Below the pieces are notes generated by a model that made no database searches, was not told the origin of the DNA, and saw only the letters and a list, made by a program, of their open reading frames with translations. From Wallemia ichthyophaga EXF-994 (taxonomy: Eukaryota > Fungi > Basidiomycota), in NCBI RefSeq assembly GCF_000400465.1, contig NW_008806284.1:300001-332000 (forward strand): a stretch of 32,000 nucleotides of DNA. Direction: 5' to 3'. Position 1 is the stretch's first letter, and the number at the start of each line of letters is the position of its first letter. The translations under genes and the position numbers were made by a program. Below are positions 1-30,859 of the stretch, piece by piece.

Positions 1-1202
1 CTCCCTATCACTCTCCATACCCTTCTGCAGACGTTCAGACTCCTTGCGCTCCTTCCATAGGGCAACATAGAGTTTTCTGTCGTCGCGGCGCTCAGCGAAA
101 TACGCCCAAGTCCACTTCTTATTGCGCTCGTGCACCTCATTGAGAATGGCCCTCGCAGCAAAAGAAAGCAGGGCACGAGGTTTGTTGGCATGCAACTCAT
201 CAGCATTCGGACGCAAGCGAATATATTGAGATTGACGGATGTGGAAATGGAAGTTATCAACCATGAGGAGAGCATCACGGTACTGCTCCTCGTTGAGCAT
301 AAAACCAATCCTGTCAAAGAGAAGTTCAATGTCAAGTTTGGGAGTGTCGCTGGTGGCCTGGTGGTTCATACGCAGACGACCCTCACCAGAAACAGGTTTG
401 AGAATGTATTGATGATTTGGAGTATTTTGTTTGTTGGCGATAAGGGAAGTGAATTTCTCGATGGCGATGTTTGTTGGGTGACCGAGGAGGGATTCAGCGT
501 CAGTATCCCAGTAAGCAGAAAGGGATTCAAGCTTAGCAAGCTTATGAATGCCTTCTCTATTCTCTTCGATGAAGGTGGGTAGCCAGTTAGAATCTGTGGA
601 AACAGCGCTAAAGCCGCTAAGGGTGAGACCAACGGCGAATAACTGATTATGATGACTAATACTATCTTGATAGCGTATATGGATGTTTTCGATAACGAGT
701 TGAAGATTGTTGAGGATCTTGGTGACTAGTGAATTGGCGAATGACTCGTTCTTCTTCTCGTCTTCTGGGGAGATACCAGGGGAGGCTTGTGAGTTTAACA
801 ACAACTCAGCACTATCAAGCCTTTCCTGCTTAACTTGTTGAGAGCGTTTATCATCTTCTTCGGCGTCAAACTGAGTGAAATTTAGCGGGGATTTTGAAAA
901 AGGGGTTAAGATACCTGACTAGCGCCCGCAGGTAGAGCAATGAGGTAGACATTATCAATGTTAATCTTGCATGGTTTCCCTTTAAGGTTACTCCACGGGA
1001 TACTGAGTGTTAGTTCACCGAGGTAACCCTCCTTGACGTCAACAGGCAACCTAAACTTATCCAAAGCGCTTTTCCTCAATTTAAGATTCTTTAGCTTGAC
1101 ATCTCCACTCCAAATGCCAACGTTAAGTTGGCTTGTGTCGAGATTATCGATGTACGCTGAGAGGAATCTATTGAGTAAGCCAGCGACGACACCTTCAAGC
1201 AT
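1..1202 (-). CDS. VPS13: Vacuolar protein sorting 13 (lipid transfer protein), N-terminal part; runs off the window start. Exons 1202-915 and 870-<1
   Basis: N-terminus [77 protein letters not shown] is the chorein-N signature. A 44-nt phase-0 intron 914-871 (GTATCT...GCTAA...CTCAG) is followed by [18 protein letters not shown]...[23 protein letters not shown]...[17 protein letters not shown]. Confidence 0.95.
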
Positions 1203-1420
1203 CTTTGGTATATTTAATTAGCTTATTTAATTAGATGATGGTTGTTGAGGGATAACAATAAATGACATCACATGCGCAGATCATTAAATGAAAATTGTTT
1301 TTTGATTAGTTTATAATGACCTTATAAAAGAATAAATCAATTAAAATGTGTCTAGTTGAATAATTATTAATTTGGGTTGGTTGCTAAAATTTTCATCCGA
1401 CATCCACAATTGTTTATTTC

Positions 1421-2317
1421 CTACTTTGACACTGGAACTGGTGCAGTGCCAGCTTCAGTAACAGCCTTCTTAACACTCGTCCTTCTACCGACAGATTTGT
1501 AAGTTTTGACGTAAAATGCGATAAAGAGGAAGAGGTAGCTGGTGAGTAAACCACAACCACAGAAAGCAGCGAAACGACTACCAGTACAATCACCAACGTG
1601 TGGCCAACCCCATCTATAACCGTAATGTTGATAAGTTGCAAAGTAAACGATGAAGATATCGATAATGAATTGAGTGATTTGCATTGTAGTGAGGTACTTT
1701 TTCCACCAAATTCTGGCACCACCAGCTGTAGCGTAGTAGTAGTAGTACATGAGTACGTGAACTGCCAAATTGAGTGAAATAACCACCCAACTAACAGCTG
1801 TTCTACCTTCAAGTTGGGTGTAACACAGAGCAGCTGTAGCAGCGTGATGGAATACGTGAAGGAATGCCAATGGCTTCTTCTTTAACACTAAGAATACCGT
1901 GTCTATTAATTCAATATACTTGAAGTAGTAGTTGATTATGTAGTAAAACTCTAACTTATCTGTCCACGCTTCTTCACTACAGATACTGTAATAGAAGCCA
2001 TGTTTGTAGATCATCGGCACCACTTCCTCAGCCATTAAAGCCAGTAATACCCCACTACCCACGTATAACACCGTGTTATGCAATTGAAACGCTATTTTCA
2101 ACTTGAATGGCTCACGTCCACGCATCAGTTCGCGTCCACCAAATATTATCGCTAAATACGCTACTATCGCTGATGCTACCCCTTCTAATGTACTCAACGG
2201 CGTTATACCAGGCACCCACTGCTGCAAATACGTTGGTAAATGATACTGCTGGGGTATATACGCGTGTGCCATTGATGAGAGCGTGTCGTAGATATTTATT
2301 TTATTTATCTTATCCAT
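1421..2317 (-). CDS. ELO: GNS1/SUR4-family very-long-chain fatty acid elongase (apparently intronless)
   Basis: Contains KYIELIDTVFLVLKKKPLAFLHVFHH (HxxHH box), NLAVHVLMYYYY and TTMQITQF motifs plus several TM segments. The start is more likely ATG 2317 or 2272 than the ORF-track ATG at 2446. Confidence 0.93.
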   Translation of the reverse strand: MDKINKINIYDTLSSMAHAYIPQQYHLPTYLQQWVPGITPLSTLEGVASAIVAYLAIIFGGRELMRGREPFKLKIAFQLHNTVLYVGSGVLLALMAEEVVPMIYKHGFYYSICSEEAWTDKLEFYYIINYYFKYIELIDTVFLVLKKKPLAFLHVFHHAATAALCYTQLEGRTAVSWVVISLNLAVHVLMYYYYYATAGGARIWWKKYLTTMQITQFIIDIFIVYFATYQHYGYRWGWPHVGDCTGSRFAAFCGCGLLTSYLFLFIAFYVKTYKSVGRRTSVKKAVTEAGTAPVPVSK

Positions 2318-2457
2318 TTCTCTCCGTTTCTTTTTCGCGTCTTGAAATACCTCGCTTCGAATTAGAAAATAACACGGACGCTTCCTCATACCAAAATTAG
2401 GGTTACTGAAATTTTTCATTTTTATTATTACATCGGTGTCTATCATCTAAAACGCCT

Positions 2458-5134
2458 TTATTGCCCTCCTCCTCCATTACCCATAGCCCTTACCTGCTGC
2501 TGCAGCTGTGGTGGCAGATTGGCGTTGTTAGCCCCCATAAGTGCTGCTTGCTGGAGTTGTGGGGAGTTGAATGGCTGTGTTGATTGTGCTGTTTGTGGTA
2601 CTTGATGCACTTGACCTGCTTGACCTGCTTGACCTGCTTGCCCTGCTTGCCCACCTTCTCCTACTCCCCCTCCTCTGGCTACAGCCGCAGCAGCAATTGC
2701 GACTGGGTGATTCGGCGGCAACATCCTCGGATTTCCCCCTTTCATTAAAAATGCCTGCGCCTGTCTATACGCCGCTGCTTGCTGTCTACGCACCAACTCC
2801 GCCTGTACCTGTCTATCCCGCTCCAACTTGAGCGTAGACATCACCACTGGATCTAGCTGTAAACGAGTAACATCCGTTGCATGTGTCTCATGCGCGAACA
2901 AACTAACACGCTTCGCTTGACCTTCTCGCTTGCTCATTTCCTTCTCACGCTTCTTGACCGATTTGCCTATTAGCGTTACTAGATGGCTACGTCGTTGGGC
3001 GCGTCGCGATTGGTCGCTAGGCAACTGCTTTTTCTTGGTGTCTTTTGTCTTTTTTGTCGTTTCTTTGACGTCTTTATCTTTGTCTTTCTCTCTCTCCTTC
3101 TCTCTCTCTCGCTCTTTCTCTTTTTCCCTTTCCCTCTCCTTATCCCTCTCTTTCTCCCTCCCCTCGCCGCTTTTCCACCTCTCGAAGCAATCCACTGGCT
3201 CGCGTCGATCAGCCGGTCTATGAGAAAAAGCCTGATGAGAGCCATTAAAGATATCAGCAACGAGTAACCAATTCCCTGTGTACTGTTGAGTGAGGGTGTG
3301 TAGTAGATTGTCTTCTTCCTCGCTCCACTGTAGACCAATCGCGGGGGATCCCTCTGGTCTATTTTCCCAGCAAGTATTTGCACTCCCGCTCTTGGTCTTT
3401 TTCCCGTGAAAAAGGTCACTAGCGCCTGTACCTGCACTTGCACCTACATTTCCCCCCTCCATGACACCATCGAGGGTATGTGTGTAGTTATCAAATGTAT
3501 CCACATCCCATGCCGACCGCGCACGATGTTTTCCAGGCTCGAGGGAAGACACGAGCATAGTTTTGTACTGCATCAGTCGACTAACATGTGCGACTCGGCC
3601 TGCTTGTGCACTGCTTGTGTCTACCCGACCATTTTCATTTCCATTTCCACCTAAGGCTGTTGCTGTCGCTGCTCCCACTCCTCGCTCCACCTTGGCAGTG
3701 TGTACGGGCGCGCGCATACTCTGTGGCGCGGTTGCGCTGGCAGTGACAGTATAGGGTGGGAGGTCGGGGAATAACTCACTCAAGTCACTAACCTCCCCAC
3801 CACTCATTTCGCTCATGTCCGCCATCACCCTCATTTCTCCCTCCAACAACGGTTTGCGGGCTTCTATTATATCTTTGTGTGGTGTGGTGGTGTGAGTGTT
3901 GGTGGTGGTGCTGGTGTGTGTCGATTGCGATTGTCCCGAGTACATTGAATGCCCAGATTGCGCCGAGCTCCCTGTATCTCCTCCCTCTTCCTCCTCCCTG
4001 ATATCTTGCTCGAGCGTAGGCGGTCTAGTGAGCTCGTCTATATCCATAGGCAAGTCGGTGTGAGTGTGTGAGTTTTTGAGTGCGGTAGCATCCTGCTCTT
4101 GCTCTTGCACCTGTTCCTCCTCCTGCTGGCGTAATATTCTCCCAGCCATATTGTCATCGACCATTCCCCTACCTGTTTCATTCTCCTCGTCTTTCTCACC
4201 TGTCACACCCCCCACATGCTCATTGATGGCGTCATTCACCTCCATTTCTGAGTCGATGGGAAGCATTTTTGTTTGCTGCTCTTGTTCCTCTCGCTCATGC
4301 TCATCTTGCTCGCGTCTTTTAAGCAGACTCTTCTGGGGAATTGAAGCATTAACACAGAGAGCCTTCTTGCCATCATGCCCAGCGCTATGCCATTCAGCGA
4401 CTTTGCTAGCGAGCAAGAAGGCGACTGAGAGTTTCCACCTGCGTTCCGCTTTGAAATCTGCCTGCAACCAACCCACCTGATCGAGGAGGTGATCCCAATG
4501 GGCGAGTGGAACAGCTACACCTCTATGTTTCTTTGGCTGTTTGAACGACCAGCCACCGCCAGCAACGCCAACACCACCATCCTCCTCCTCGTCCTGTTTT
4601 GCTGTATCCGCATCCGCATCGCGCGCTCGCAACGCCTGCAGATTGCCAATCCGCCGCACCACCTTGGCATACTTGACATCGTTGAATGCCACCCGCCAGT
4701 CAGTGAGGAAGAGCGCTTTGCTGGTGGTGGTGCCTCTGCCGATGACGGCGGCGGGGATGGGCTGGTATTCGTGGAGGGCATCTATGCGGTGGAAAGCGTT
4801 GCTCAGCGTGTTCTTCTTCTTGTGCTTGGGTTGGGTGACAGGAAAGGGGATCAGGCTGTGCGAGTAGCTCGGACTAGGCTGGCTGTCTGCTTGGTCTGTA
4901 GGAGAGTGGAGGTGGACAGGGGAAGGATCGAGGTGGCTAGTAAATTATAAGCCTGGCTCTTTGAATTGCTCGCGACGATTATATAACCCACCTCCTATCT
5001 AATTTCCAAGCCTCGAGGAAATCCATCGGGGGGGTATCACACTCGACCAGCCCAAAAGGCTTAAAATAAGGCGTGGAATATAGATTATATAGGTAATTTA
5101 TAAGCTCGAGCCTTTTATTGAGTATTTCTGTCAT
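2458..5134 (-). CDS. EAF1: NuA4 scaffold subunit Eaf1/Vid21 (HSA + SANT domains). Exons 5134-4992 and 4936-2458
   Basis: HSA-like HWDHLLDQVGWLQADFKAERRWKLSVAFLLASKVAEWH and SANT-like WSEEEDNLLHTLTQQYTGNWLLVADIFN...DCFERW, then a Q-rich tail. The frame stays open upstream of the ORF-track start (YQPIPAAVIGRGTTTSKALFLTDWRVAFN). A 55-nt phase-2 intron 4991-4937 (GTGGGT...TACTAG) joins it to MTEILNKRLELINYLY. Confidence 0.87.
3085..3165. repeat. TC/CT-rich low-complexity tract encoding the EREKERDKEREREKEKE run in Eaf1
   Basis: Pyrimidine-rich dinucleotide-like tract on the + strand; a charged run in the minus-strand translation. Limits are approximate. Confidence 0.8.
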
Positions 5135-5162
5135 ATAAATATAATAGTGATGGCTGTACCCG

Positions 5163-5881
5163 CTATACAAGCAATTCCTTGGATTTCGTCTGGTTATTGA
5201 GCTTGGTGGATGAATCGGTAAACATTTTCTGAAATTGCTTGTTAGACTCGTTGGACTAGTGATTTGTTAGGATAGCCTTGTAAATTGCTAGTCACCCACA
5301 TCAAACTCCCGCCATCCATAACCCAGGTACGCCTCATCCTCGTCCTTACGCAGAATATCCTGTACACTCGACAGCGCCGGCTTGTCCCCACTGGCCTGTG
5401 CCTGTATACCAATCAGCTTGGACGTAACACTCCCCGTAGTTGCCTTCTTATCCTCCTCCTCCTCCATATCCTCGACATCCTCCGTCTTCTTGGTCTTTAG
5501 CTGGTTGAGATTGACGCGCAACTGATAAATATCCTCCAGCTTATTCAAATGCAACTCCCCTTCCTGGATTATCCCCACAAAGTAATTAGTATTCACCCCC
5601 ATCAGCGTCGACGAGTACTCGAGCTTATCAATATCATTAGCCTTGTTATACACAATACCCCTCTTATCCAGCTCCGTATACAACTTGATCTTCTTATTCT
5701 CCTTCTTGATCTCTGCCTTGATTGGCCCACTCAAGTTACTCGTACTCGTCGGAAACTGCAACAAACTCAAACCTTTCATCTTCTTGTTCATCTTTATCGG
5801 TATACGCTTCACTAGTGGTGCTGTATGCGGTGGCAGCAAGTACTCTGGCAGGACTTGCACGCTCTCCTTATCGTCTTCCAT
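5163..5881 (-). CDS. RPC5: RNA polymerase III subunit Rpc5/C37 (Sin-like). Exons 5881-5300 and 5255-5163
   Basis: LVKRIPIKMN...LSLLQFP...YFVGIIQEGELHLNKLEDIYQLRVNLNQL fits the Sin_N/C37 pattern. A 44-nt intron 5299-5256 (GTGGGT...CTAAC...CACTAG) adds the last exon SNESNKQFQKMFTDSSTKLNNQTKSKELLV*. Confidence 0.75.
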
Positions 5882-6011
5882 GATGGTAGTGGTGGTTTGA
5901 GGCGAATATCCGCGTAATATACATCACAGGTACTCTACACCACTCTATCCAACCACACAAACATCCTCAATCACTCTCGCTCTCCCTTCCCCGCTGAAAA
6001 TATTCACCCTT

Positions 6012-6413
6012 TCAGACACTCCTCTCTGGTCTCTGTAGCGACTTCAACTTGGGTCTGCCGATATTACCATTGGAAGTAATCCCACTGCGATTCCTACTTG
6101 TCTCGCCAACATTCCCTATCCTACGTCTGTTCATCTCCTCACTCATCTCCTTCCCCAGCTGCATTCCCCTGCTATAAACTATTTCTGCCGCTGCTTTAAA
6201 CACATCATTACCCTGCTGTCCCCGCTGAAAATCTTCTTCGGCAATGTTCTCTTCCGAAGGAAAGACGCCACCGATACCCCAAACCGGCCTCTCTTTCAAC
6301 TTCCTCACGCGATTATTCTTTGCATCGATAGCGTCTCGTTTCTGATCATCTGGCTGTCTACTGTGAGCGCTAGTTGACAGTGACACACCCACACTCACAC
6401 TCATCCTTGCCAT
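6012..6413 (-). CDS. Small soluble protein homologous only to the cytosolic N-terminal region of the aquaglyceroporin at 20815-23012 (no MIP domain)
   Basis: AKNNRVRKLKERPVWGIGGVFPSEE matches AKHNEHMRRVKSKRPLWGIGGVFPAED; GNDVFKAAAEIVYSRGMQLG matches GQEVLNAAAEAVFSRGRELG; NGNIGRPKL matches TGNLGSTKF. A possible in-frame 45-nt intron at 6398-6354 (GTGAGT...GCTCAC...GACAG) would give 118 aa instead of 133 aa. Confidence 0.7.
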   Translation of the reverse strand: MARMSVSVGVSLSTSAHSRQPDDQKRDAIDAKNNRVRKLKERPVWGIGGVFPSEENIAEEDFQRGQQGNDVFKAAAEIVYSRGMQLGKEMSEEMNRRRIGNVGETSRNRSGITSNGNIGRPKLKSLQRPERSV

Positions 6414-6429
6414 TTATTTCTTTTTCCTA

Positions 6430-6493
6430 ATCGAAGCTTCACAAGATGTTGGAAGGTGCCGCCTTGATTTATTTTTGATTCCCGCTGACATCA
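6430..6493. promoter_or_regulatory. Conserved upstream footprints ATCGAAGCTT (6430-6439) and TGACATCA (6486-6493)
   Basis: The same two words recur at almost the same spacing upstream of the paralogous pseudogene (7376-7385 and 7431-7438), while the sequence between them has diverged. Confidence 0.45.
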
Positions 6494-6926
6494 TCCTTTG
6501 TAATCTCACTCAAAGTCGGCTCTAAATCGAGGTTTCACGGCAAATATGGTGCATCTCTGGTTTGACTTGAAATATAAATTAATTCAAATGCTAGCTGGTA
6601 AAGTATCAGAGCCTTGATTGTGTGATATAGTGACTCTTTTAACGCCTGGGCACCACTTTTGTCACCGTGCTTCTGCACTTGATCCCCTTGAATCGCAATT
6701 AAGCAATGAATCAATAACTATTCATCCAAACTCACCTCTACACAAATTTACATTCTTGCGCATTCTCACATTCTCCCACTTTCGCACTCATTTCATTGAA
6801 AATATTCACCCACTCACGAACCTCAAATGCTCTTCGCAGGTCTCAGCAGTGGCCTCAGCTGAGGACGCGTGAGTTTAGCAATGGTTCTGCTGCTGCTGCT
6901 TTTTAAATTCATCTTGATACTATCTT

Positions 6927-7297
6927 TCATGCTACTCTTGATGCTCTTGCTGCTTCTCTGTATATTGCGCTTGCACCTCTCGATTCCCTTTCGAGCTTAA
7001 TTTCATCGCTTAGCACCCTCCCTAATTGCATTCCCCTACTGTTTGTAATCTCTGCAGCAACTTTGAAAGCATTCTCTGTATCATTGCTATTGCTATTGCT
7101 CTTGAAACCACTACCACTTCGGGTCTGTTGAACCCGATGAAAATCTTATTCATCCCTCTCTTCTGAAGGAAAGACACCGCTGATACTCCACAAGTATCTA
7201 TGTTGATTCTTCGAGTGATCAGTGAGCTCATCTGGCGAGTAATTTTATTGGTTTGATTGTGTGCGAGTGTGCTTTGAGAGATTGTGCTGTGAGTCAT
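6927..7297 (-). pseudogene. Degenerate tandem paralog of the 6012-6413 gene
   Basis: A frame not shown in the ORF track reads NYSPDELTDHSKNQHRYLWSISGVFPSEERDE*DFHRVQQ...NAFKVAAEITNSRGMQLGRVLSDEI...*. An in-frame TAA replaces the Glu of EDFQR, and the 5' part is in another frame. The 5' limit is approximate. Confidence 0.75.
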
Positions 7298-7772
7298 TCT
7301 GCATCCCTCACAAAGCACACCTACTATTCCTATCGCTTTGCACTTCAAACTCTACCTCCTACTTTCCACTGTCTTATCGAAGCTTATAAAGGGATGGGAT
7401 CGTACTGGCGTCTTTATTATCGACTCGCACTGACATCACGTCACCCATTGCACTCTGCTTCCATAATAGGCCTTTGAACATTCAAATTCACATTCGAATT
7501 CGCCTCTTTCTCAACCCTTGCTCTTATCTCGCTTGCTGAGACATGTCAGTGGTCAAAATTAAAACAAGTCTGAATTCATTATAGTCTCGATCTATGCACT
7601 CATCGTGGCGCTTTAGGCACAAGTAAACCATTTCGTCATCTACTTCTTCACCGCATAAATTATCAGACCTGTCTCACTTTGTCGAAGCAAGTCTAATGTC
7701 GTTAAAACGTGTAGCATATATCATGACAATAAATTAGTCATTACAAATGGGGTATTGTCTACAGAAGCTTAT

Positions 7773-8735
7773 CTAGAGCAAGTCACCCTTGGAAGAGTCC
7801 CAGGAACCACTACCAGCTGATGTATCCTTGGTTGCGCCAGTGGCCCAGTCACCTGAAGTGCCCTTGCCACCCATCTTGCCCTTGCCTCCCTTTGGACCAC
7901 CCATCATACCTTGTCTCTTGAGCAAATCACCGCCTGAAGATTCCCATGAGCCACTACCAGCTGAGGTGTCCTTGGTTGCACCAGTGGCCCAGTCACCTGA
8001 AGTGCCCTTGCCGCCTTCGCGTGCCGTCAAGCCTCTCTTACCACCCTGGTAAAATTGACCTCTCTTGAGTAAATCACCCTCGGAGGAGTCCCAGGAGCCA
8101 CTTCCAGCTGAGGTGTCCTTGGTTGCGCCAGTGGCCCAGTCACCTGAAGTGCCCTTGCCACCCATCTTGCCCTTGCCTCCCATACCGTGTGCTTGTCTCT
8201 TCAATAAGTCACCGTCTGAGGAGTCCCAAGAGCCGCTGGTTGCTGCAGTGTCCTTAGTGGCACCATTGGCCCACTCACCAGACCCAGCGCCTTTGCCAGC
8301 ACGCTTGAGCAAGTCACCCTCGCTGTGGTCGTTTTCACCTGCTGAGGCGGCGCTGTCTTTAGTAGTACCGTAGTTCCATTCGCCAGCTAAAGGATATTAG
8401 CTAAGACATTTCGGAAAGTAAAAGTCAACTCACAACCACCACCTGAACGTCTTACTCCGTCAGCTGCACGGCTTTGGTACTGGATTACTGTTTAGTTACT
8501 TTAAAATGCATCGAATGATACTCACGCCACGCTTCAAAAGATCACCCTTTGAGCTATCGGTTTCGCCAGAAGTGGCAGCGGTGTCCTTGGTAGCGCCGTT
8601 GGCCCATTCACCAGAGCCTGCGCCTGAGCGAGCGATCTAATGTGCTTGTGAGCGCCGTCATAGGTGCAAATAGTCACGTACCGGAGCGGCTGTTGCAGCA
8701 GCAACCATTGCGATTAAAGCGATTGAGAACTTCAT
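7773..8735 (-). CDS. Secreted Kex2-processed repeat protein (KEP), 274 aa, six GDLL-ending repeats. Exons 8735-8682, 8636-8526, 8479-8434, 8386-7773
   Basis: Signal peptide MKFSIALIAMVAAATAAP, introns of 45, 46 and 47 nt with canonical sites, and exon lengths summing to 825 nt. Repeats SG(E/D)W..G.TKD...GDLL are separated by six KR sites. Confidence 0.85.
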
Positions 8736-9228
8736 AGTATTTGAATTGATGTGGGAGTGTTGTAAAGAAGAATTGTTTTAGAATCTCTTAAATTTATATT
8801 TCATTTTAGCGCCATTTTTAGCGTAGCATTCCGAAGATCCGGCACGAATATTCAAATTTCAAATGGCCGTGGCAAATATGATAGACGATGAGCAAGTGCG
8901 AGTAGCTAGACCATCCTTGATGTTCAACACGTGCTGAATTGAGTGATGGAAGCTGAAGCGGGAGAGAAGTATGTGAAAAATTCAAGTAATTCAAACGATG
9001 CTCTTAAAATGGTTTTCTTAAGGAACTTGTACACATTAACAAGCTTCTGCAAGCTCTATACACGGCAAGGCAGTAAGACATCGTGTCTTATTTTGATCAA
9101 ACACACGCATTCTAGATAGCAAACATTGTAATATGATAATTTCTAAAAACAAATAGACACATAAGCTTATTCATATCCCAAAGTAGTCATCATCTCTATT
9201 ATTTCAAGAAGTCATCGTAATTTTCCTT

Positions 9229-9798
9229 TTACATTATATTTCTCCTAAGCAGCTCAACCTCACTTTGATCACTTTCACCTGCTGAGGCAGCACTGTCCTT
9301 AGTATTACCATAGTTCCATTCAACATCTACATTGAATTAGCTCAGACATCCTTCAAAGTTATGCTAAACTCACTTCTACCAGAAAGCTTGAAGCTGCTGA
9401 CATCAAATTGGCCTCGACGACGCTCAAGTAAATATGCGTCAGAGTTGTCGCAAATGCCATTGCCTGCTGAGCTGGTCGAGGTAGCGCTGGTAGCCCATTC
9501 ATTGTCATCAACTGAGCGACCATTATAAAGACCTTGCGATTGAATTTTCAGCTACTAAAACTAGCGTGATAATTACACACACGCCAAGAGCACCATGTCT
9601 GGACTCCTGGAGATTGCCTTGCGACCCTTCTGTCTCGCCAGAAGTGGCAGCGGTGTCTTTGGTAGCACTGTTGGCCCATTCACAAGAGCCTGCTTGTGAA
9701 CGAGCGATCTAGTGTGCCTGTGAGCGCTGCAAAGAAACACGTACTGGAGCGGATGTTGAAGCAACAATTATGGCGATCAATGCGATTGAAAGCTTCAT
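9229..9798 (-). CDS. Diverged tandem paralog of the KEP at 7773-8735 (three repeats); possibly pseudogenising
   Basis: MKLSIALIAIIVASTSAP, then a 36-nt intron 9744-9709, then IARSQAGSCEWANSATKDTAATSGETEGSQGNLQESR, then LYNGRSVDDNEWATSATSTSSAGNGICDNSDAYLLERRRG, then a 47-nt intron 9373-9327, then VEWNYGNTKDSAASAGESDQSEVELLRRNIM*. The middle intron needs a weak phase-1 donor to keep the frame. Confidence 0.6.
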
Positions 9799-11217
9799 TT
9801 ATATGATTTTATGGGAATGTATTGAAAAGAAAAGGAAAGCTCTGTACTTTCTCATTTAGATCTCATTTAACACATTCTTGCGTCACTTTATCGTGGTAAG
9901 ATAGAGAGCCGGCATAAGGAAGCATTTTTAGCTGGGGCAGTTTCGTGGATACCCGAAGACTATCATTGGAGATACTAACGCTAAAGTGAATGGTGTGTTA
10001 TACCGTTGTAGTGATTAGCCAAGCGAAATACAAAACGCGATAAATCCCGAAGAATGTGGAAGTAGCTTGTTTTTGGACTGTTAGGCATTTACACCACATC
10101 AAGCTAGCTTTGGCGAGGATTGTCTGATATTCAAGACAGCAAGACGATTGGTCATAATGTGATCACGACGCACATCCTCGAAGTATCCCAAAATGATAAG
10201 ATGAGGTGTAGAAAACGAAGCTTCAATTACTCGCATTACTAGAAGTAGCCATCTGGCCGACATGTAACTGGAACCCCTCTCGATTTCTAAGAGTAACTTC
10301 AACGCACCCAACAATTATAATAGCATGGGTATCACGACATTTGAAGCGATCAAATGACCTCTTTCAGAATTCTAATTCATCTATTGTTACAGTTCATAAA
10401 GATTTCTGGCAACATTGCGCGACGGTTCAATGTGAATCTGAAAGTCAAAGCTACAGAGCGAATGCATCTTGTAAAGATTTATATCGGATCAAGCCCCTGC
10501 TGATAATCGAGTGGAGCTCAGAGTAAGATGGATTTATTTTATACCTTTGCCGAGGCAGTCAAACCGCCAAACTTTATCTAAAAAACCAGCCGTCTGGTCT
10601 CATATTGCTCCGACAAGATGGAGCATTTTGACAGCTTTGATCACTGATTCGTAACTGAAGCTGGCCACTGACATGTCATGAAACTAATAAACTTAATTAA
10701 ATCCGCTCCGCTGGCCGTTGATCGGCAAATATCCAATCGAGGACTTCATAACCGTTCATTTTGACAGCACCCTCAAATGTTGCCAGGAACTAGCCGCTTG
10801 TAGGACGTATGAAGCGCATTAGAAAATATCAGAAATCGCGAGTAAGTGTGTGAATCCATATTTTTTAGATTGATTCACGTCTTGACTGAGTGTAGAAATG
10901 GGTGACTGAATTGCGTATGATGTATGCAAGAGTAAGACAATGAAGCAGTAGCATAGAAAATTTTCGAAAGCATTTGTGGTTGTTTTACAGTCACTCTGTA
11001 TGAAGATAAAGGGGTCTGTTGATAGACGTGCATAAGCAGCAATGAATAGCAGCGACTGAAACATCTTATAGAAGTATGACGTTTGTGGAAATTGACCTCA
11101 GCCAGGTTTGCTTGATGTGATGACTAAATGCTGAACAAATACACTCATTAACACCGTGAACGGCTATGAGGATCCCTAGTATACCAAAATACAGTTTTAC
11201 TTGACTATATCAGCCTG

Positions 11218-11830
11218 GAGCTCTTACAGCAACAGAAGCTTTCCAACAACAAAATGTCCTTATTACAATACTATATATGCTCATATATACCCTTAATTTG
11301 CGCCACATAATGCTTCAGCCTCGTTAGCTTGGCAGAATGACGAGATGTGACTATAGCAGAAGAATCATCAGCCCAGCTGGCTTTATAAGAAGCGCTATAT
11401 CTCTCTTGCTTTTCTACATCCCAAAAGACAGAAATGTACTTCAACACCGCCAAAGCTCTCGCCGTTCTTGCATTCACTGGCACCATCGCATCAGCAGCAG
11501 TCACACAACCAGACAACATCGCCCGTCGCAGAGATGAGAAAGACGCCAACGCCATCAAAGACCACAAGGATGACTACAACTATGGTAATGGTGTCGATTC
11601 CAAGAATGACAACAACCACGGCAAATACGACAAGCAAGACAAGCTATCTCACGAAGAGGCACTCAAGAAGCATCGCGAGGAAGTTGAGAAGCAAATCAAG
11701 CTGAACAATGAGGCTGCTGAGAAGAACAAAGCGGATGTCAAGGTTGGTTGAAGTGATGTTTGGTGAAAATCAGCTTACACTGTTTTACCAGAAGACAGAC
11801 GAATACTGGAAGTCTGACAAGAAAGATGAC
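11218..11830 (+). repeat. Near-identical segment (promoter, exon 1, intron) duplicated in inverted orientation at about 30250-30859
   Basis: Identity starts abruptly at GAGCTCT (11218 versus 30859) and continues through the TATA-rich promoter, exon 1 and the intron into EYWKSDKK. Confidence 0.95.
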
Positions 11831-12448
11831 AGCGATGAAATCAACTATAAGAAGCACGATGGTAAGCACGACAGTAACGACGAGAAACAAGATAGCAAGT
11901 ATGTCAACAAGAAGTCCAGCCATATCAAGCACGAGGATGATCGTTATGGTGGCAACGACAAGAAGCACAGCGGCGATAAACACAGCGACAACAAAAAGGA
12001 AGAGGATAACAAATACCACATGAAACATGACGACCAAATTTCAAGCGGTAAGAAGCATAGCAACAACGACATGAAGCATGACGACAAGATGGACAAAAAA
12101 GTGAAGCACGAAAATAATGATAAGAAGCATGATAATGAGGATTTCAGCGGTAGCAAGAAGCACGATGACAATAAATACAACGAAAAGACGTCTGGGAACA
12201 ACATTAAGATTCATGACAACGACATGAAACACGACGATGGCAAGTACGATGATAGAAAGTTAACTGAGAACAATTACGGCAGTAACGACAAGACGCACGA
12301 TAGTGACGTTGAACACGGCAACAACGGCAAGAATCAAGGTGACAAGAAGCATTACAATAAGCACAACGAAAACGACAAAAAGGCCGAGAACAAAAACGGC
12401 GAGAAGAACAACAACAAATACGACGACGAAAATAATGAAAAGAATTAA
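11434..12448 (+). CDS. Secreted His/Asp/Lys/Asn-rich hydrophilic repeat protein, copy A (321 aa). Exons 11434-11742 and 11792-12448
   Basis: Signal peptide MYFNTAKALAVLAFTGTIASA, dibasic site IARRR, a 49-nt phase-0 intron 11743-11791 (GTTGGT...TACCAG), then many KH(D/S/E/G)-type motifs. Confidence 0.85.
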
Positions 12449-12513
12449 GCATGCTGATCACTGCACATAGTAATCTTTCTGAATCATGTATTGAATCACG
12501 AATGAACTAAATT

Positions 12514-12577
12514 GTCTTGAATATGAACGAAATTGGAACCAAAAAGTCTTGAATATAAATGCAATTGGAACCAAAAA
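12514..12577. repeat. 32-bp tandem direct repeat, two copies (29/32 identical)
   Basis: GTCTTGAATATGAACGAAATTGGAACCAAAAA followed by GTCTTGAATATAAATGCAATTGGAACCAAAAA. Confidence 0.9.
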
Positions 12578-12841
12578 TTCTTAGCAGATGTTCTAGCACA
12601 GCCACGGCAAGTAAATCTGCAGTACGCTGATACTTGTTGCGCCGAATGAGCTTGAGCCGAAGCGATCCGCGCAGCAGCGTAAGGAAAAAGTTTACTGGCC
12701 GGGAGAAACCCAAAAATAATTAATGTAATTCGTAAAGGGGAGCTCTGCGAACGGCAGGATTCCTGCGTTCGTCCGTCGGCCAATTTACACGGCCAAAAAA
12801 AGAACGAGCAGCACCCTTATATAGACGAGGGAGGATGAAAT

Positions 12842-13468
12842 TTGGAGTGTTCATCAACATCCAAAACAAGAAACATGCCAGCAGCTACAGCAGCAAAAAT
12901 ACCGATCCCCATATTCTCGAGCAGCATCCAGGGCTTCGATCCATGTACGGCGTGGTGTCCAACGCTCCATTTAACGACGCACTCTTCTATAACGAGCAGC
13001 GGTGAGCTACTCGTGGATGTGCTGCAGTTCAACGAGACTATTGCAACGATATCGCTCAAACCTAATGGCAGGGGAGGACTCGGTAGATTTGGATATCTCG
13101 AAATGCAATTCGATAAAGAGATACATATGATGCCTGATACCGGATACAGCGCTCTTAGTGCGAGTCCACCGCGCATCTCAACGCCCTACCTCTCCACAGC
13201 GAAATGTGTTGGAAACGTAATACGCACCCAGAAAGAAGTCCTGGCGGATTTTGTGGAGAACAAGGAGAAGACACACCCGCTATTCAGAAGCATGAGGTCG
13301 AAGGCACACCAAAATCGATCATTCATCAACATCTACAAGGATGAAGCGGTGAATGGAGTTGAGTGTTTTATTCTGATAGTGTGTCGCAAGCTTTTCGCGG
13401 GTATAGGGTTGAATGAGAAAGCGCACCCACCGCACAAGACAAGCCATCACAAAAGCGTCAAGGTGTGA
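12842..13468 (+). CDS. Hypothetical protein (about 200 aa), no family recognised
   Basis: A 208-codon open frame with globular composition, preceded by a TATA-like CTTATATAG at about 12817. The start could be ATG 12875 (MPAATAAK). Confidence 0.55.
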   Translation: MECSSTSKTRNMPAATAAKIPIPIFSSSIQGFDPCTAWCPTLHLTTHSSITSSGELLVDVLQFNETIATISLKPNGRGGLGRFGYLEMQFDKEIHMMPDTGYSALSASPPRISTPYLSTAKCVGNVIRTQKEVLADFVENKEKTHPLFRSMRSKAHQNRSFINIYKDEAVNGVECFILIVCRKLFAGIGLNEKAHPPHKTSHHKSVKV

Positions 13469-13671
13469 GGGGGATGTAGGCAGTCTACGCTCATCCCACC
13501 AGTCAATTTATATCCAGTCAGTCCTACTAAACCATCCCCGCTAATCTAGCAATTCTGCAATCTAACAAAAATGCATTTAAGGCGTATATGAGATGCGTAT
13601 CGTGATGAATTATATTATGAAGATCTAAAAATGGCTTGCGGTTATGATATATTTGCTTCGTCTGTCTGCAA

Positions 13672-14212
13672 CTACACGATGCGATATGTGATCTGTTCGA
13701 CAAACATGTTGCTACTATACTTGGTATTATACAGTGCACTCTGCAATTCGAAAACGAAGCTATATAGTGTGAGATTGTGAATCATACACATAAGACACCC
13801 ACCTATTCAGATAATCTTTCTCCTGCTCCAGATCTGCATTGCTCTTCTTAAGCAGCAGCACCTCCTCCTTGAGCTGCGCCGTGATACGCTGACGCGCGCG
13901 AAAGTTAGCAACGTTTTGGCGATTGCGTTCTTTGCGCGTCTGTCTCGTGGACACCTGCTTCCCAACACTTGGTGACGGTGTTTTAGATGTTTTTGCGGAG
14001 CAAGACTCGGAGGAGGCATCTAAGCGCGAGTGGGAGTCTGAGAACTGAGAATCTTCTGCTTTTAACATGTTTGGGAAGGGGTGAGCTGTGGATTCTATAG
14101 TGCGCATCAGCTGCAATGTCCTTGACTCTACGCACGACGTACGGCATCCTTCCACTCTTACTGGGTATGCGTAATTTGCCACTGCTGCCGCTGAATTGTG
14201 GGACATTATCAT
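13672..14212 (-). CDS. bZIP transcription factor 1. Exons 14212-13803 and 13759-13672
   Basis: Basic region RKERNRQNVANFRARQR. A 43-nt phase-2 intron 13802-13760 extends the heptads: LKEEVLL-LKKSNAD-LEQEKDY-LNSFVFE-LQSAL. The 5' end is uncertain. Confidence 0.72.
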
Positions 14213-14778
14213 CGGGTGTAAACTATTAAAGAGCTGATGCAGCTTTTATGGACGCTTCAGCCCCTTGTGTTTCTCATTTTTTGGGGTGCCGCTGAACCAA
14301 ATGACAAATCTAGGCACACGGAGAGTGAGAGGGGAAAATTGCCCTGAGGAGCGATGGAGGGAGAACTTATGAAATTCTGCAGCTAATGCGCCGTGTGCGG
14401 ATGTCAAATGAGACGTATTTGCTGTTTTTCTGCACCTTGGGATACACGCTGCAAGCACTACATTCAAGTTAGGAACGATTATGTGCCTTATACCAGCTAA
14501 TAAAACTAAGGAGTCAAATTAAACTGGGCCAAGAACTTTCGGGAGGCATTTGATGCTTCCAGAAAAAGCCACCAAATGTTACCAAAAGCTACCGCTGTGG
14601 AGATGGCCGAGAGCTGAAGTGGAGAGATGTCGAATAAGCCTAGAGTATAGATATTTTGACGGATATCTGGTAGTACAAAATATTAATTGGCCGATCTAGC
14701 AGCCAGAATGTGAGATATGCGGGTGTAGAATACACAGTGATATTGGGACATAGCGTTTGTATGACTACCGTAATTTTT

Positions 14779-15464
14779 CTAGAAGATCCTTTGTGTGTAC
14801 ATATTGCCCCCCTCATAATGGCCCTGCTGCTCGAGTGAAAGGCGTCTATTCTCATCCTTTAGCGCGAGATTCTCCCTCTGTAGGCGCACTCGCTCCCGCT
14901 TCAGCCAGTCGTTTTCCATCTGCAGTGACTCTGTTTTGTACTGCTGACGGATTCTGAATCTACTCGCAGCCTGCTTGTTCCTCTCGCGCTGCTGGAGCTT
15001 CTTATCGGCGTCGTTGGTATCTGAGATATTGTGCTGGGTAGTAGTGCTGTTGCTGCCGAGACTATCTGCGGTACTGGCATTGGTATTGGTATTTAAGGAT
15101 GACTTCCTGCTCGAAGTCGCATTGCTGCCTTCAGATTCATACGAGCTGCGACGCGATCTGGCGAACGAGGGTTGCTGATGTATGTAGTGCGGCAGCGCGA
15201 ATGGCGGTATCTCTCTTTCCGGTGCTAGGGTATTTCTATGTTAGAGACATAGCCGAGACGCACGCCACTCACAGGCTTTAATACCGGTAAATCCGTTGGC
15301 GGGGTATGTTTGGTAAAAGGGACTTAAATAGGAGGATTCTTGGTGGGAATGTTAGCTGAGTGAGACGTCAACACATCTCACTCACCCTGCTGCGCTGTAC
15401 AACTCGCGCTGGTCGCATTTGAGTTGCCGGGGCTGTCGTTGTAATTGGTTTTGGTTTTGGACAT
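14779..15464 (-). CDS. bZIP transcription factor 2 (196 aa; absent from the ORF track). Exons 15464-15386, 15338-15273, 15224-14779
   Basis: KKLQQRERNKQAASRFRIRQQYKTESLQMENDWLKRERVRLQRENLALKDENRRL has canonical N-x7-R-x9-L spacing. Introns are 47 and 48 nt (GTGAGT donors, CTAAC branch sites), and the exons sum to 591 nt. Confidence 0.8.
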
Positions 15465-16387
15465 TTGAACATGAACGTATGATCAGAACCAGCTGTCGAT
15501 GGCTTTGTTCAGATCGCCCTCCGATTTTAATCAGATTGATGATCTGGTAACGCAACCCACTCGCGTGTTCGCTTAATGAAGGCAGTGCCTTATGGATGGA
15601 GAAAGCGCGTGGCTATGTTTGTGTATTGCTTCATTTTACTTCCATTCCACGCTCTTCCTCACATGCCTATCTTCGCGGCAGCAAATTTAATATAAATGGT
15701 CAGATGAGAATGCATGGACACAATCCGAGAAGGGGAAAATAATTGCAACGTGTACCAAACAGCCACGGGATATCGTGGATTCTTTTTTGATCCAAAAGTA
15801 AGCGTTTTGAATCCTCCGAGGACTCAACCCGGAGAAGAGGCATTAGTCCGAGATGCGCCAGGGTATTTTTGGCGCTGGAGGCTTCTGGACGTAAATTGAG
15901 TTTTCATGCACATACACAATTACGCACCCATGTTTACATCACAAAACCTCCGATAGTCCAAATTGCATTCTAAATATATCTCCGATAAAAAGGACAGAGA
16001 ATCAAATACATATCCATGACAGCGCTGAAAGCAGTCCCACGATTCTCCCGCATACGCCAACATACCACCGCGCCATGTGACATAAATCTTCAATATGTAA
16101 ACATCAAGTGGAGGTTAGTCAGCTATGACTAAACATCCCGTGGCGGGTAAGAAGTGGGTGTAAGGATCTTTAGGGGATTACTGTCCAAAACAACAAGATT
16201 GTGCTATTGTTTTTGAAAATTGGCCGCGGAAATGAAGCTGCCAATGCTGGGGATGCATATGCATGATTTCATCTGTCCGATCAGTGCGGAAGTGAATAAG
16301 CAAGTGTGAAAGCTGCCGCTCAGGCGCTCAAGCCAGAGCCCGAGCCCAAGCCATAGCGTCCACGTCTTCTCCTCCTTCTCAACATCG

Positions 16388-17176
16388 ATGAGCGTCGATA
16401 TTGATTACACCAAGCTCGATCAAAGCCTGGCAGACAATCTGCTCAGCATTCTCAATGAGCGTCTCGAAGAGATGCAGAAACCATCGATCCTCGGCCACAT
16501 CGAGTTTACGAATCTGAGTTGGTGGGTTTGAAGATGGCGGGAGATGCGCACCGCTGACGCATCCGCAAGGGGAGATATGGCGCCTGATATTGAACTGGAG
16601 GAAATTGGAGAGCTTTCTGAGGAGTTCAACGAGAGCGATGAGGAGGACGTGAATGGTGAGGATGAGGCGCACGAGGCGGCAGATCTCAAACACCCGGCAC
16701 AAATTAGAGACAGCAACAACAACCACAACGCCAGTGAATCACAACCCAAAAGAGCCTCCTCAACAATCCCAAATATGCAGATACAGTTGCGCATTACGCA
16801 CGAATCAGATATGCGTTTAACGCTGCTCACGAATCTTCTCGTAAACTTCCCAAGTCCAGGCTTTATGAGTTTGCCCGTCAAACTCGCAGTGCGGGGGATT
16901 GTGCTCCACTCGAAAGCCATCATCGGCATCGACAGCCAGAGACGCCAGGTGCATTTCTCACTGGTAGAGCCATACGACGAGAACAGCGAGGATGACGACG
17001 ATGTACAGAATCACATTCTCCAGAGTCTAGTCGTCGAGAGTGAGATTGGGGATGTGGACAGACACACACTCAAGAATGTGCGCAAGGTCGAGAATTTCGT
17101 ACTCGAATACCTGCGTAATCTTCTCAATAACGAGATTGTATGGCCCAATTACCACACGTTCATTCTCGATGATTAG
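16388..17176 (+). CDS. MDM12: ERMES complex SMP-domain subunit Mdm12. Exons 16388-16521 and 16570-17176
   Basis: MSVDIDYTKLDQSLADNLLSILNERL...KPSILGHIEFTNLSW|GDMAPDIELEEI; LLTNLLVNFPSPGFMSLPVKLAVRGI; VESEIGDVDRHTLKNVRKVENFVLEYLRNLLNNEIVWPNYHT. A 48-nt intron lies at 16522-16569. Confidence 0.93.
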
Positions 17177-17476
17177 CGTGTGCGATTGGCAGGGGAGTTG
17201 CACAAAATATACCACAAGCACAGCAAAAACATAGCTCGATTGTATAGAATACTCAATGAATTTGTATATTAGACGGCTCGAGGCGAGCGCGGAGACTACT
17301 ACGGATACATCTCGCAGCTAGCACAAGAAGAATTTGAGAAGACAGCACAGTTAATAAAAGGGCTAAAACACCTACACGCGCCTCTAATATACTCTCACTC
17401 GATTTTAAATATTTTGAAAATTTGGTGACGAGAAGACTTTTTCGATGTGAGTTTCTTAGACCGCAACAGCTTCAGC

Positions 17477-17631
17477 GTGAGTAGAATTTTGAAGCAGGGA
17501 GAGTACGCAGGGTTAGAGAAGCCATGTGGAATTGCTGAGCTTGTTTTTCATACTTTGGTTGTTTTTCTTACTTGGCTTGCTCGCTTTCGTACTCCCCAGC
17601 ACCTACAAACACATCACTAACAAATCCACAG
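17477..17631 (+). other. 5'-UTR intron of RPL5 (155 nt; alternative donor at 17447) containing a predicted long hairpin
   Basis: GTGAGT donors at 17447 and 17477, ACTAAC branch site at 17616-17621, and CAG acceptor at 17629-17631, 4 nt before the ATG. Complementary arms lie at 17494-17524 and 17573-17600. Confidence 0.65.
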
Positions 17632-17635
17632 TAAC

Positions 17636-18580
17636 ATGCCATTCGGTAAATAGACCTACTGTACACTTGCCACACCTCCTAACAAACCCTTAGTCAAGGA
17701 AGCCAAGAGCAACGCTTACTTCTCTCGCTACCAAGTCAAGTACCGTAGACGTCGTGAGGGAAAGACCGACTTCTACGCTCGTAAGCGCCTTGTGACCCAA
17801 GCCAAGAACAAGTACAACGCACCAAAGTACAGACTTGTCGTCAGATTCACCAACACCAACATCATCTGTCAAATTGTCTCTTCAAAACTTCAAGGTGACG
17901 TTACTTTGACCCAAGCTAGTGCACGCGAGCTTCCAAACTATGGTATGAAGAACGGTCTCACATCATGGACTGCAGCCTACGCTGTTGGTCTCCTCGTCGC
18001 CAGAAGAGCGCTCACCAAGCTCGGTTTGGCCGACAAGTACGAGGGTGATGTCGAAGCCACCGGTGAATACAGTCTCACTGAGCCACTCGGTGATGACGAG
18101 CCAAGACCATTCAAGGTCTTCCTTGACGTCGGTCTTAAGCGTACCTCCACCGGTTCCAAGGTCTTTGGTGCCCTCAAGGGTGCCTCAGACGGTGGTCTCT
18201 ACGTCCCACACTCCGAAAACCGTTTCCCAGGTTACGACATTGAGTCCAAGGAGCTCGATGCTGAGATTCTCCAAAAGTACATCATTGGTGGTCACATTGC
18301 TGAGTACATGGAGTCTCTTGAGGAGGAAGATGAAGAGAGATTCAAGAAGCAATTCTCTCGTTACCTTGCCGACGGTGTTGGCTCCGATGACATAGAAGAC
18401 ATTGTCTCCAACACCCACGAGGCCATCAGAGCCAACCCAGAGTACAAAAAGACTGAAAAGAGCAAGGACTGGGCTTCCGAGAGCAAGAAACACAAGGCTA
18501 CTAAGCTCACTAAGCAACAACGTGATGCTGGTATCCAACAACGTATCCAGTACTTCCAACAAGCTGAGAACGCTGAGTAA
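17636..18580 (+). CDS. RPL5: 60S ribosomal protein L5 (uL18). Exons 17636-17645 and 17694-18580
   Basis: MPFV|KEAKSNAYFSRYQVKYRRRREGKTDFYARKRLVTQAKNKYNAPKYRLVVRFTN...LDVGLKRTSTGSKVFGALKGASDGGLYVPHSENRFPG. There is a 48-nt intron at 17646-17693 and strong codon bias. Confidence 0.99.
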
Positions 18581-19145
18581 ACTCTCTTGTAGCATGCTCT
18601 TATATATTAACTGTCTGTTGTTTTACATGAGTTTGAAGGTGTGGTTGATGTGTTTGAATTATATGAAATTTTTAATCTCTCATTAAAGCGGAAGCCTAGG
18701 TAGACCTAATGAATAATTTAAGCAACCAGTTGATTCATTTTCAAACCTTGTACCGCTTGTGTTGCTTTTAGAAATGGAACACGTGGAGAATATTTTGGAC
18801 ACGCGGAGAGATCAACGAGAATGCAATACCGGATAAGAAAGTGAGTTTTTGAGGCCAAGCATACGTATGGTATTGCTAAAAACTTCACGTTCACGTGTCG
18901 GAGTAATGGACAAGTAGTTAAGAGCTCAGCTTCAGCACATTTCCTCTTTTCAGTCTTGACATGGATAGTTGAGGACAATTGGTGGACACTGAATACTAGA
19001 TGAAGATACTAGACACTCGTGGACATTTAGTTGAAAGTACTTGCCTTAGCTGTCTTGGGAGCTGATCTTACATTATAGGTTGTGGCTACCTCGCCACTGG
19101 CATGTCTTCTCTATCACATATGCGCTTTATAATTTTCAGTTGCCT

Positions 19146-19538
19146 TCACTGTATGCTCACTCCTCTAAACCACTCCACAAAACCTGGCTGATCCGTGCGT
19201 GTATGGGCTTGGCATAATTTAGAAAATAATAAATCCCAAAAAGTAGAGGAAATGAATCTGACCAAGGCATAGTCTACTAACTTTAATTCAAACTTCGTCA
19301 TGACTTGGGTTGATGGTATTGAAGATGAAGACGCCAAAGCTGCTGAAACCGTTGGCATTTCTGAAGGCCTTGTATCATTAACTAGTGCTCTGATTTCATA
19401 TGGAAGATTGTTTGAGTCATTGTGACGCAAAATACCAGTGTTTGTGTGTACATAAGTCTCGGATGCGAGCAACTCTATGATTTTGGCCGTTTTCGAATGT
19501 AGCATCTTCATAAAAAGCAAGGTCTTGGTCGCCTTCAA
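19146..19538 (-). CDS. Possible exon of a spliced hypothetical gene
   Basis: A 130-codon frame with a plausible GTGAGC donor near its 3' end. No family recognised and the exon structure is unresolved. Confidence 0.25.
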   Translation of the reverse strand: MKATKTLLFMKMLHSKTAKIIELLASETYVHTNTGILRHNDSNNLPYEIRALVNDTRPSEMPTVSAALASSSSIPSTQVMTKFELKLVDYALVRFISSTFWDLLFSKLCQAHTRTDQPGFVEWFRGVSIQ

Positions 19539-30643: not shown

Positions 30644-30859
30644 TTCTGTCTTTTGGGATGTAGAAAAGCAAGAAGGATATAGCGCTTCTTATAAAGCCAG
30701 CTGGGCTGATGATTCTTCTGCTATAGTCACATCTCGTCATTCTGCCAAGCTAACGAGGCTGAAGCATTATGTGGCGCAAATTAAGGGTATATATGAGCAT
30801 ATATAGTATTGTAATAAGGACATTTTGTTGCTGGAAAGCTTCTGTTGCTGTCAGAGCTC
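30250..30859 (-). repeat. Inverted copy of the 11218-11830 segment
   Basis: Reverse-complement match to the copy A promoter, exon 1 and intron. Confidence 0.95.

Follow-up and report, generated by a model that had tools for sequence, protein, structure and literature searches.

In a 32,000-nucleotide stretch of the Wallemia ichthyophaga EXF-994 genome (contig NW_008806284.1, positions 300,001 to 332,000; hereafter the window), a minus-strand gene encodes a predicted secreted precursor built of six repeats, which we class by its sequence as a Kex2-processed repeat protein (KEP). Our favored reading, to which we assign a probability of about 0.7, is that Kex2 cuts this precursor into six linear peptides, each ending in -GDLL, and that these peptides have a sequence-specific recognition role. 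KEPs are common in fungi, and very few have a known product or role. The gene itself is already annotated and is listed in a published expression table; what appears to be new, judging by the searches described below, is a lineage-restricted sequence family within the known KEP class.

By definition, a KEP has a signal peptide, three or more internal repeats, and dibasic pairs (KR, RR, or KK) separating them (Le Marquer 2019). The protein has a predicted signal peptide, six repeats, and a KR pair after each of repeats 1–5, and on these grounds it is a putative member of the class, with cleavage at the dibasic pairs as the predicted outcome. The class holds 7878 proteins from 1345 strains, mostly of unknown function. 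Two KEP surveys, in the portions available, count 6 and 7 KEPs in W. ichthyophaga EXF-994 and note Wallemia as relatively KEP-rich. We found no published description of the family in the sources available, two of them in part, and the gene may be among the 6–7 KEPs that those surveys counted. A preliminary description of this DNA had proposed a KEP of an undescribed family, and the class criteria, the lack of a Pfam or PDB match, and relatives found only in Wallemia and Wallemia-like contigs all support this.

Repeat architecture and predicted peptides

The precursor contains six 26-residue cores, each ending in GDLL, with KR after cores 1–5 and the stop codon after core 6. It has seven dibasic sites, six KR and one RR, where composition would predict 1.5 occurrences of [KR]R, and each internal LL directly precedes a KR. 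The preliminary description had reported six repeats, quoting the peptide AGKGAGSGEWANGATKDTAATSGSWDSSDGDLL and the spacer GQFYQGG, and a final repeat whose GDLL-stop falls where KR would sit; the count, the peptide, and the spacer were all found, and the terminal arrangement was recovered in the spliced protein. It was also right about the overall layout, but left out the RR of the spacer that precedes repeat 2, as well as the diverged three-repeat paralogue directly upstream (9229–9798).

Cutting in silico at these sites and removing the KR or RR leaves fragments of 34, 10, 31, 33, 43, 7 (GQFYQGG), 38, and 46 amino acids (aa), and the residues that follow KR are GY, AG, QA, GQ, GL, and QG. 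The six predicted peptides are 31–46 aa long (3.0–4.4 kDa) and rich in Gly, Ser, Thr, and Asp, with 7–11 Ser/Thr each and a grand average of hydropathy (GRAVY) of -0.6 to -1.05. Five have a predicted isoelectric point of 4.0–5.5 and the last is basic; two begin with Gln. AlphaFold modeled one repeat as coil without secondary structure, at a low-confidence mean predicted local distance difference test score of 58.6.

Thirteen columns are invariant across the six repeats, and profile scores are 60–74 bits per repeat. Tandem Repeats Finder identified a 144-nt period at 7772–8181 with matches of only 79%, so the repeat is mainly a protein-level feature. Repeat 5 opens with GLTAR, a sequence similar to spacers found in relatives (ARLTR, ALLTR, and GLTVR).

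Gene model and signal peptide

Hand splicing places the gene at 7773–8735, exactly from stop codon to ATG and exactly as the preliminary description had it. Four minus-strand exons (8735–8682, 8636–8526, 8479–8434, and 8386–7773) are separated by three introns of 45, 46, and 47 nt, all GT..AG, and form a coding sequence of 825 nt that translates to 274 aa. Features are collected in Table 1. Window positions 1–19798 are 100% identical to W. ichthyophaga EXF-994 scaffold KE007234.1, in which the gene is annotated as GME3023_g, a hypothetical protein of 265 aa. The exon junctions are identical in our model and in this published GeneMark model; the annotated start is the internal methionine M10 (window 8708), with which half of the signal peptide is lost. 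A TATA box, the first ATG after it, and a conserved N-terminus suggest that translation starts at 8735 rather than at 8708. The truncated signal peptide in the annotation could make secretome-based screens miss the gene.

The N-terminus MKFSIALIAMVAAATAAP has a mean Kyte-Doolittle hydropathy of 2.19 over residues 3–17, and small residues precede the likely cut. Its sequence is conserved across the paralogue and four further taxa, among them W. mellicola and the fungi of contigs L008 and L009. As with intron 3 here, an intron just ahead of the GEWNYGTTK-type repeat is inferred in the paralogue and in contigs L008 and L009. Two plus-strand open reading frames (ORFs), 7789–8052 and 8065–8373, were rejected as genes, being antisense shadows of the KEP repeats.

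Table 1. Coordinates of the KEP gene, its parts, and its tandem paralogue in the window
Feature	Position	Strand	Remarks
Whole KEP coding sequence (GME3023_g)	7773..8735	-	274 aa, 4 exons, 3 introns; hand splicing
TATAAA box	8793..8798	-	~60 nt upstream of ATG 8735; no ATG in between
Exon 1, predicted signal peptide MKFSIALIAMVAAATAAP	8682..8735	-	Hydropathy, conservation
Intron 1, 45 nt, GTACGT..TAG	8637..8681	-	Relatives too have an intron directly after the signal-peptide exon
Repeat 1, alpha type, IARSGAGSGEWANGATKDTAATSGETDSSKGDLL-KR	8529..8636	-	Profile score 74 bits
Intron 2, 46 nt, GTGAGT..CAG	8480..8525	-	Hand splicing
Exon 3, 46-nt micro-exon, spacer YQSRAADGVRRSGGG(S) containing the RR site	8434..8479	-	Peptide also in published model
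Intron 3, 47 nt, GTGAGT..TAG	8387..8433	-	Hand splicing
Repeat 2, beta type, GEWNYGTTKDSAASAGENDHSEGDLL-KR	8301..8384	-	Profile match
Repeat 3, alpha type with second Trp, AGKGAGSGEWANGATKDTAATSGSWDSSDGDLL-KR	8196..8300	-	Profile match
Repeat 4, gamma type with Gly/Lys/Met-rich arm, QAHGMGGKGKMGGKGTSGDWATGATKDTSAGSGSWDSSEGDLL-KR	8061..8195	-	Profile match
Spacer GQFYQGG-KR, nine residues	8034..8060	-	Read from spliced protein
Repeat 5, gamma type, GLTAREGGKGTSGDWATGATKDTSAGSGSWESSGGDLL-KR	7914..8033	-	Read from spliced protein
Repeat 6, gamma type, GDLL then stop codon 7773–7775	7773..7913	-	W. mellicola gene 1 ends alike
Tandem paralogue EOR00592.1 / J056_000790 / GME3024_g	9229..9798	-	500 bp upstream of the KEP gene; same signal peptide, three diverged repeats

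Conservation and selection

We compared 51 repeat units from five Wallemia-type taxa, and 49 of them end in [DE]LL or a similar sequence followed by [KR][KR] or the protein end; the two exceptions both belong to the window paralogue, which is degenerate. From species to species, the spacers vary in length and sequence. In all six full-length family proteins, [KR]R is four to five times commoner than composition predicts. GDLL-stop is found in the W. ichthyophaga KEP and in W. mellicola gene 1, and the other members end in GDLLR-stop or GDLLKRGY-stop. Given the GDLL-stop and the [KR][KR] boundaries, all copies would therefore share one C-terminus, following the logic of alpha-factor.

The ratio of nonsynonymous to synonymous divergence (dN/dS) between KEP cores is 0.03–0.25 for most computable pairs and reaches 0.6 in two pairs that involve repeat 1. 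The proportion of synonymous differences between the six cores is 0.34–0.82, with synonymous sites near saturation. For repeats 1 and 3, for example, identity is 88% at the protein level and 67% at the DNA level. The low dN/dS together with the synonymous divergence shows that the repeats are old and that selection on the peptide, rather than recent duplication, maintains them; the cores are under strong purifying selection.

Three core subtypes recur across species: alpha (WANGAT[KS]xTAATSG), beta (WNYGTTKxSAASAGEND), and gamma (DWATGATKDTSAGSGSW). Conservation is positional, with W, G, T, SG, and GDLL invariant. Alpha and gamma cores of W. ichthyophaga match those of W. mellicola at 64–72% identity, and the neighbors at the same locus are 76% (ELO), 57% (RPC5), and 46% (HSA/Myb protein) identical; the identity of the cores is comparable with that of ELO and RPC5.

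Taxonomic distribution

The preliminary description had suggested a hidden Markov model search of the repeat across fungal genomes. A profile made from the six KEP repeats was searched with HMMER against 1.84 billion representative proteins, and the relatives recovered were all Wallemia-type, with no characterized family among them. Eight of the nine matches were true relatives: fragments from other W. ichthyophaga strains, the tandem paralogue, two W. mellicola proteins, and proteins from ENA/Logan assemblies. Those with names are all called 'hypothetical protein', except for a chimeric W. mellicola model named for its transporter domain. The ninth match (P0009, a bacterial-looking repeat protein of 573 aa) covers only profile positions 11–27 and was rejected as a chance low-complexity hit. 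A Pfam scan of the KEP protein found nothing significant, and a PDB sequence search with it gave no match. JGI metagenome contigs scanned with a four-species alignment yielded 258 pattern matches and no true relative. Family members turned up in Wallemia and in Wallemia-like metagenome contigs and nowhere else in these searches.

W. mellicola has two adjacent family genes, with six and seven repeats, in a syntenic position next to RPC5, the HSA/Myb protein, ELO, and VPS13. One of its protein models, TIB80531.1 (SPRC01000015.1, L001 10001–12653), is a 708-aa 'SBF-domain-containing protein' that proves to be a chimera, joining the start of a small secreted protein, an SBF transporter, and a complete six-repeat KEP (gene 1) with its own signal peptide. 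ENA contigs L005–L007 (up to 126 kb) belong to a fungus with 32% G+C and short introns that is present on 24 contigs. Its UTP23 shares 62% identity with the W. ichthyophaga protein and about 45% with agaricomycete proteins, a difference that points to an unsequenced fungus of the Wallemia class. This fungus has its own pair of family genes ~1.7 kb apart, in a different neighborhood. Two further contigs with family members have 48% and 43% G+C.

In other W. ichthyophaga strains (L004, P0002, P0003), the draft contigs, which come from a population study, break within the KEP repeats, leaving partial proteins only. The available part of Umemura 2020 counts 0–3 KEPs in other W. ichthyophaga strains vs 7 in the reference, and these breaks probably explain the lower counts.

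Expression and processing machinery

W. ichthyophaga requires at least 10% NaCl (PMC3849046). In Table S6 of Zajc et al. 2013 (PMC3849046), GME3023_g has 15.6 reads per kilobase per million (RPKM) at 10% NaCl and 39.6 at 30% NaCl, a 2.5-fold difference (log2 ratio 1.34, false discovery rate 2.7e-38). The gene is transcribed and moderately salt-induced. A lack of expression was something the preliminary description had listed as counting against its proposal, and these published transcripts dispose of that objection.

Table S1 of the same paper, in the part available, lists one protein with a P_proprotein (kexin) domain and two Peptidase_S10 proteins in the W. ichthyophaga genome. Wallemia is absent from a list of Basidiomycota without KEX1, KEX2, or STE13 (PMC6339444 Table S1b). 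Peptidomics in other basidiomycetes found KEPs to be processed by KEX2 and KEX1, with N-terminal Gln converted to pyroglutamate (PMC9769878).

Proposed processing and function

Established biochemistry of the fungal secretory pathway suggests the following route. The 18-residue signal peptide would bring the precursor into the endoplasmic reticulum. In the late Golgi, the single kexin would cut after each LL-KR, after RR, and after GG-KR, and a Kex1-type carboxypeptidase would then trim the basic residues. This would set free six related linear peptides of about 31–46 aa and two short spacer peptides. All six peptides would end in -GDLL, the last copy receiving this end from the stop codon. 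Pyroglutamate is likely on two of the peptides because they begin with Gln, as in other basidiomycete KEP peptides, and O-mannose is possibly carried on many of the Ser/Thr residues.

We favor a role for these peptides in sequence-specific recognition at or outside the cell surface, either ligand-like or wall-binding. Four features point this way: positional conservation in a probably disordered core, the three subtypes, the exact C-terminus, and the modest mRNA level. Such recognition may be linked to low water activity, as suggested by the induction at near-saturating salt and by the restriction of the family to a mostly xerophilic and halophilic class. A fuller version of this idea is a class-specific extracellular peptide system that helps Wallemia at extremely low water activity, with the peptides either sensed or acting as organizers of the thick wall and clumps at high salt. 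We consider this version doubtful; if true, Wallemia would have adapted to dryness and brine by means of peptides, in a way without counterpart in other fungi.

Several points weigh against the reading of six recognition peptides. Cleavage, trimming, and secretion are all deduced from the sequence, and the signal peptide is a prediction based on hydrophobicity and conservation. The N-termini of the products are uncertain: directly ahead of the core, relatives bear either additional dibasic pairs (GLKR, KLKR, VVKR) or a conserved single Arg (LTR, TVR, IAR, TAR). This suggests a shorter product of ~26–30 aa, and the W. ichthyophaga peptides may keep or lose their Gly/Lys arms. Transcript levels are modest (16–40 RPKM), from one study with two conditions, and the salt induction is only 2.5-fold. 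Finally, the preference for recognition over bulk material is argued from the pattern of conservation.

Alternative explanations

The best placed of the alternatives, which we hold to be unlikely while taking it seriously, is that the peptides are bulk surface or matrix material. They would be Rep1-like or act as an extracellular hydrophilin in the thick Wallemia wall and matrix, holding water and ions through composition or self-assembly, perhaps with O-mannosylation. Hydrophilins are recognized by a Gly content above 6% and a hydrophilicity index above 1. The mature precursor has 23.8% Gly and a mean hydropathy (GRAVY) of -0.96, which just misses the usual cut-off. This composition and the Ser/Thr content of each peptide agree with such a material, as do the confinement of the family to Wallemia-type fungi and its induction at 30% NaCl. 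The predicted lengths are close to the 37 aa of Rep1 peptides (PMC6339444), the W. ichthyophaga genome paper emphasizes the wall in the salt response, and many copies per transcript would fit a product needed in quantity. However, the transcript level is low when set against the tens of thousands of RPKM of a small secreted Cys-rich protein in the same table. Conservation is also positional rather than merely compositional, with three subtypes kept. The very few hydrophobic residues make an amphipathic repellent or amyloid not obvious, and AlphaFold gave no strand tendency. Amphipathicity of the Rep1 type is argued against by the GRAVY range of the peptides. We therefore regard a bulk structural coat as less likely than recognition.

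A second possibility is that the protein is secreted or wall-bound uncleaved, as a disordered Gly/Ser/Thr-rich protein whose dibasic sites are unused. The paralogue has lost some of its sites, which indicates that such sites can decay. Against this, dibasic pairs mark the repeat boundaries of five taxa despite variable spacers, the last repeat in two species ends precisely at the KR position, the excess of [KR]R holds in every full-length family protein, and the genome encodes a kexin. This makes an uncleaved product very unlikely.

We find it still harder to credit that the products are anionic peptides which the fungus releases into brine or low-water substrates against microbes or competitors. 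A possible role of KEP peptides in biotic interactions is suggested by Vogt et al., and the predicted peptides are acidic, salt-compatible, and present in multiple copies. Yet they show no amphipathic or Cys-stabilized structure, and few competitors grow in the habitat of W. ichthyophaga. The strong purifying selection and the three stable subtypes are also unlike the diversifying pattern common in antagonistic peptides.

The remaining alternative is a modified or cyclic ribosomally made, post-translationally modified peptide (RiPP) of the dikaritin type. The scan for tailoring genes covered all window ORFs of at least 120 aa, plus minus-strand ORFs of at least 60 aa in part of 8001–16000. No DUF3328 (PF11807) was found in the scanned ORFs or among the annotated neighbors in EXF-994 and W. 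mellicola, as the preliminary description had said of DUF3328/UstYa genes in the window. The HxxHC motif occurs as a single stray copy, in an out-of-frame low-complexity ORF. The KEP products are probably linear because no cyclizing enzyme gene lies nearby. A dikaritin-type short core (about 4–8 aa, usually with Tyr) is absent: conservation extends over all 26 aa of the unit, and Tyr is lacking from the gamma and alpha cores. From this sequence evidence, a clustered dikaritin-type pathway at the locus is unsupported. A RiPP with tailoring genes elsewhere in the genome is the least credible alternative: KEP architecture is common to dikaritin precursors and some DUF3328-linked KEP types have Trp-containing cores, but a DUF3328 gene normally sits a mean of 3 genes away from its KEP gene, such a gene accompanies only 6% of basidiomycete KEPs, and a short core within a variable repeat is not what is conserved here.

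Paralogue and neighboring genes

The tandem paralogue retains the family hallmarks only in part (GNLQESR, AYLLERRR, VELLRR) and has gained two Cys residues. Its exon 2, as modeled in the database, is out of frame with the repeat. To keep the frame, a weak GTGTAA donor is needed, and intron 2 is uncertain. The paralogue may be decaying or changing function.

The other genes of the window are VPS13 (named from the reference scaffold annotation), ELO, the HSA/Myb protein, RPC5, the small unknown GME3022, a Lys/Asp/His-rich low-complexity gene, two basic leucine zipper (bZIP) genes, MMM1/Mdm12, RPL5, an aquaporin, a nitronate monooxygenase, and a zinc-type dehydrogenase. GME3022_g (6015–6413, minus strand) is small and expressed, at an RPKM of about 156–198. 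Its stretch AAEI..SRGMQLG has a similar counterpart in an unannotated minus-strand ORF at 6930–7145, between GME3022_g and the KEP gene, which suggests another local duplication. The W. mellicola locus showed no relative.

An inverted duplicate of 93.6% identity links window positions 30105–30859 and 11218–11972. The latter copy overlaps the low-complexity gene, which is rich in Lys, Asp, His, and Asn, is annotated as 321 aa (11434–12448, plus strand), and has no Pfam match. Two minus-strand ORFs, 13763–14245 and 14782–15240, each contain a basic-leucine-zipper-like stretch and have the look of small bZIP transcription factors arranged in tandem. We obtained a bZIP_2 match in ORF 14782–15240 (E 4e-7), and the reference record lists no Pfam match for either ORF.

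Significance and comparison with known systems

The KEP family is small, cleanly defined, under strong selection, and salt-responsive. It was found only in the class to which the most halophilic fungi known, and some of the most xerophilic, belong. This makes it a tractable candidate for asking whether secreted peptides aid life at low water activity. Peptidomics should be straightforward, given the predicted masses and the shared -GDLL end. Three annotation errors conceal the family from proteome-based screens: the truncated signal peptide, the exon frame of the paralogue, and the transporter-KEP fusion in W. mellicola.

Like KEPs in general (Le Marquer et al. 2019, Umemura 2020), the Wallemia precursor has its last repeat in register with the protein end. 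Unlike them, its repeat matches no Pfam family and no characterized KEP and was found only in Wallemia-type fungi. Rep1 of Ustilago maydis is also a basidiomycete KEP, with Kex2 peptides of roughly 35–50 aa, no known tailoring, and peptides that act at the cell surface. The Wallemia peptides differ in being very hydrophilic and mostly acidic, with few hydrophobic residues and modest expression, and they are set apart from Rep1 by composition.

The ascomycete alpha-factor precursor, MF-alpha, likewise consists of linear peptide copies split by KR, the last of which ends at the stop, with a common C-terminus, and it is processed by KEX2 and KEX1, as proposed here for the Wallemia KEP. In contrast, the Wallemia KEP has no MF_alpha or MF_alpha_N Pfam match and no repeated X-Ala/X-Pro STE13 signature after KR, and its predicted peptides have two to three times the length. 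The mating pheromones of basidiomycetes are lipopeptides of cytoplasmic synthesis.

The KEPs of Coprinopsis cinerea and other agaricomycetes (Vogt et al. 2022) give linear, minimally modified basidiomycete peptides with pyroglutamate at an N-terminal Gln, and kep knockouts in these fungi had no phenotype (Vogt et al. 2022). Those peptides belong to an unrelated sequence family and are mostly 8–20 aa long, whereas the Wallemia family is restricted to its class and induced by salt.

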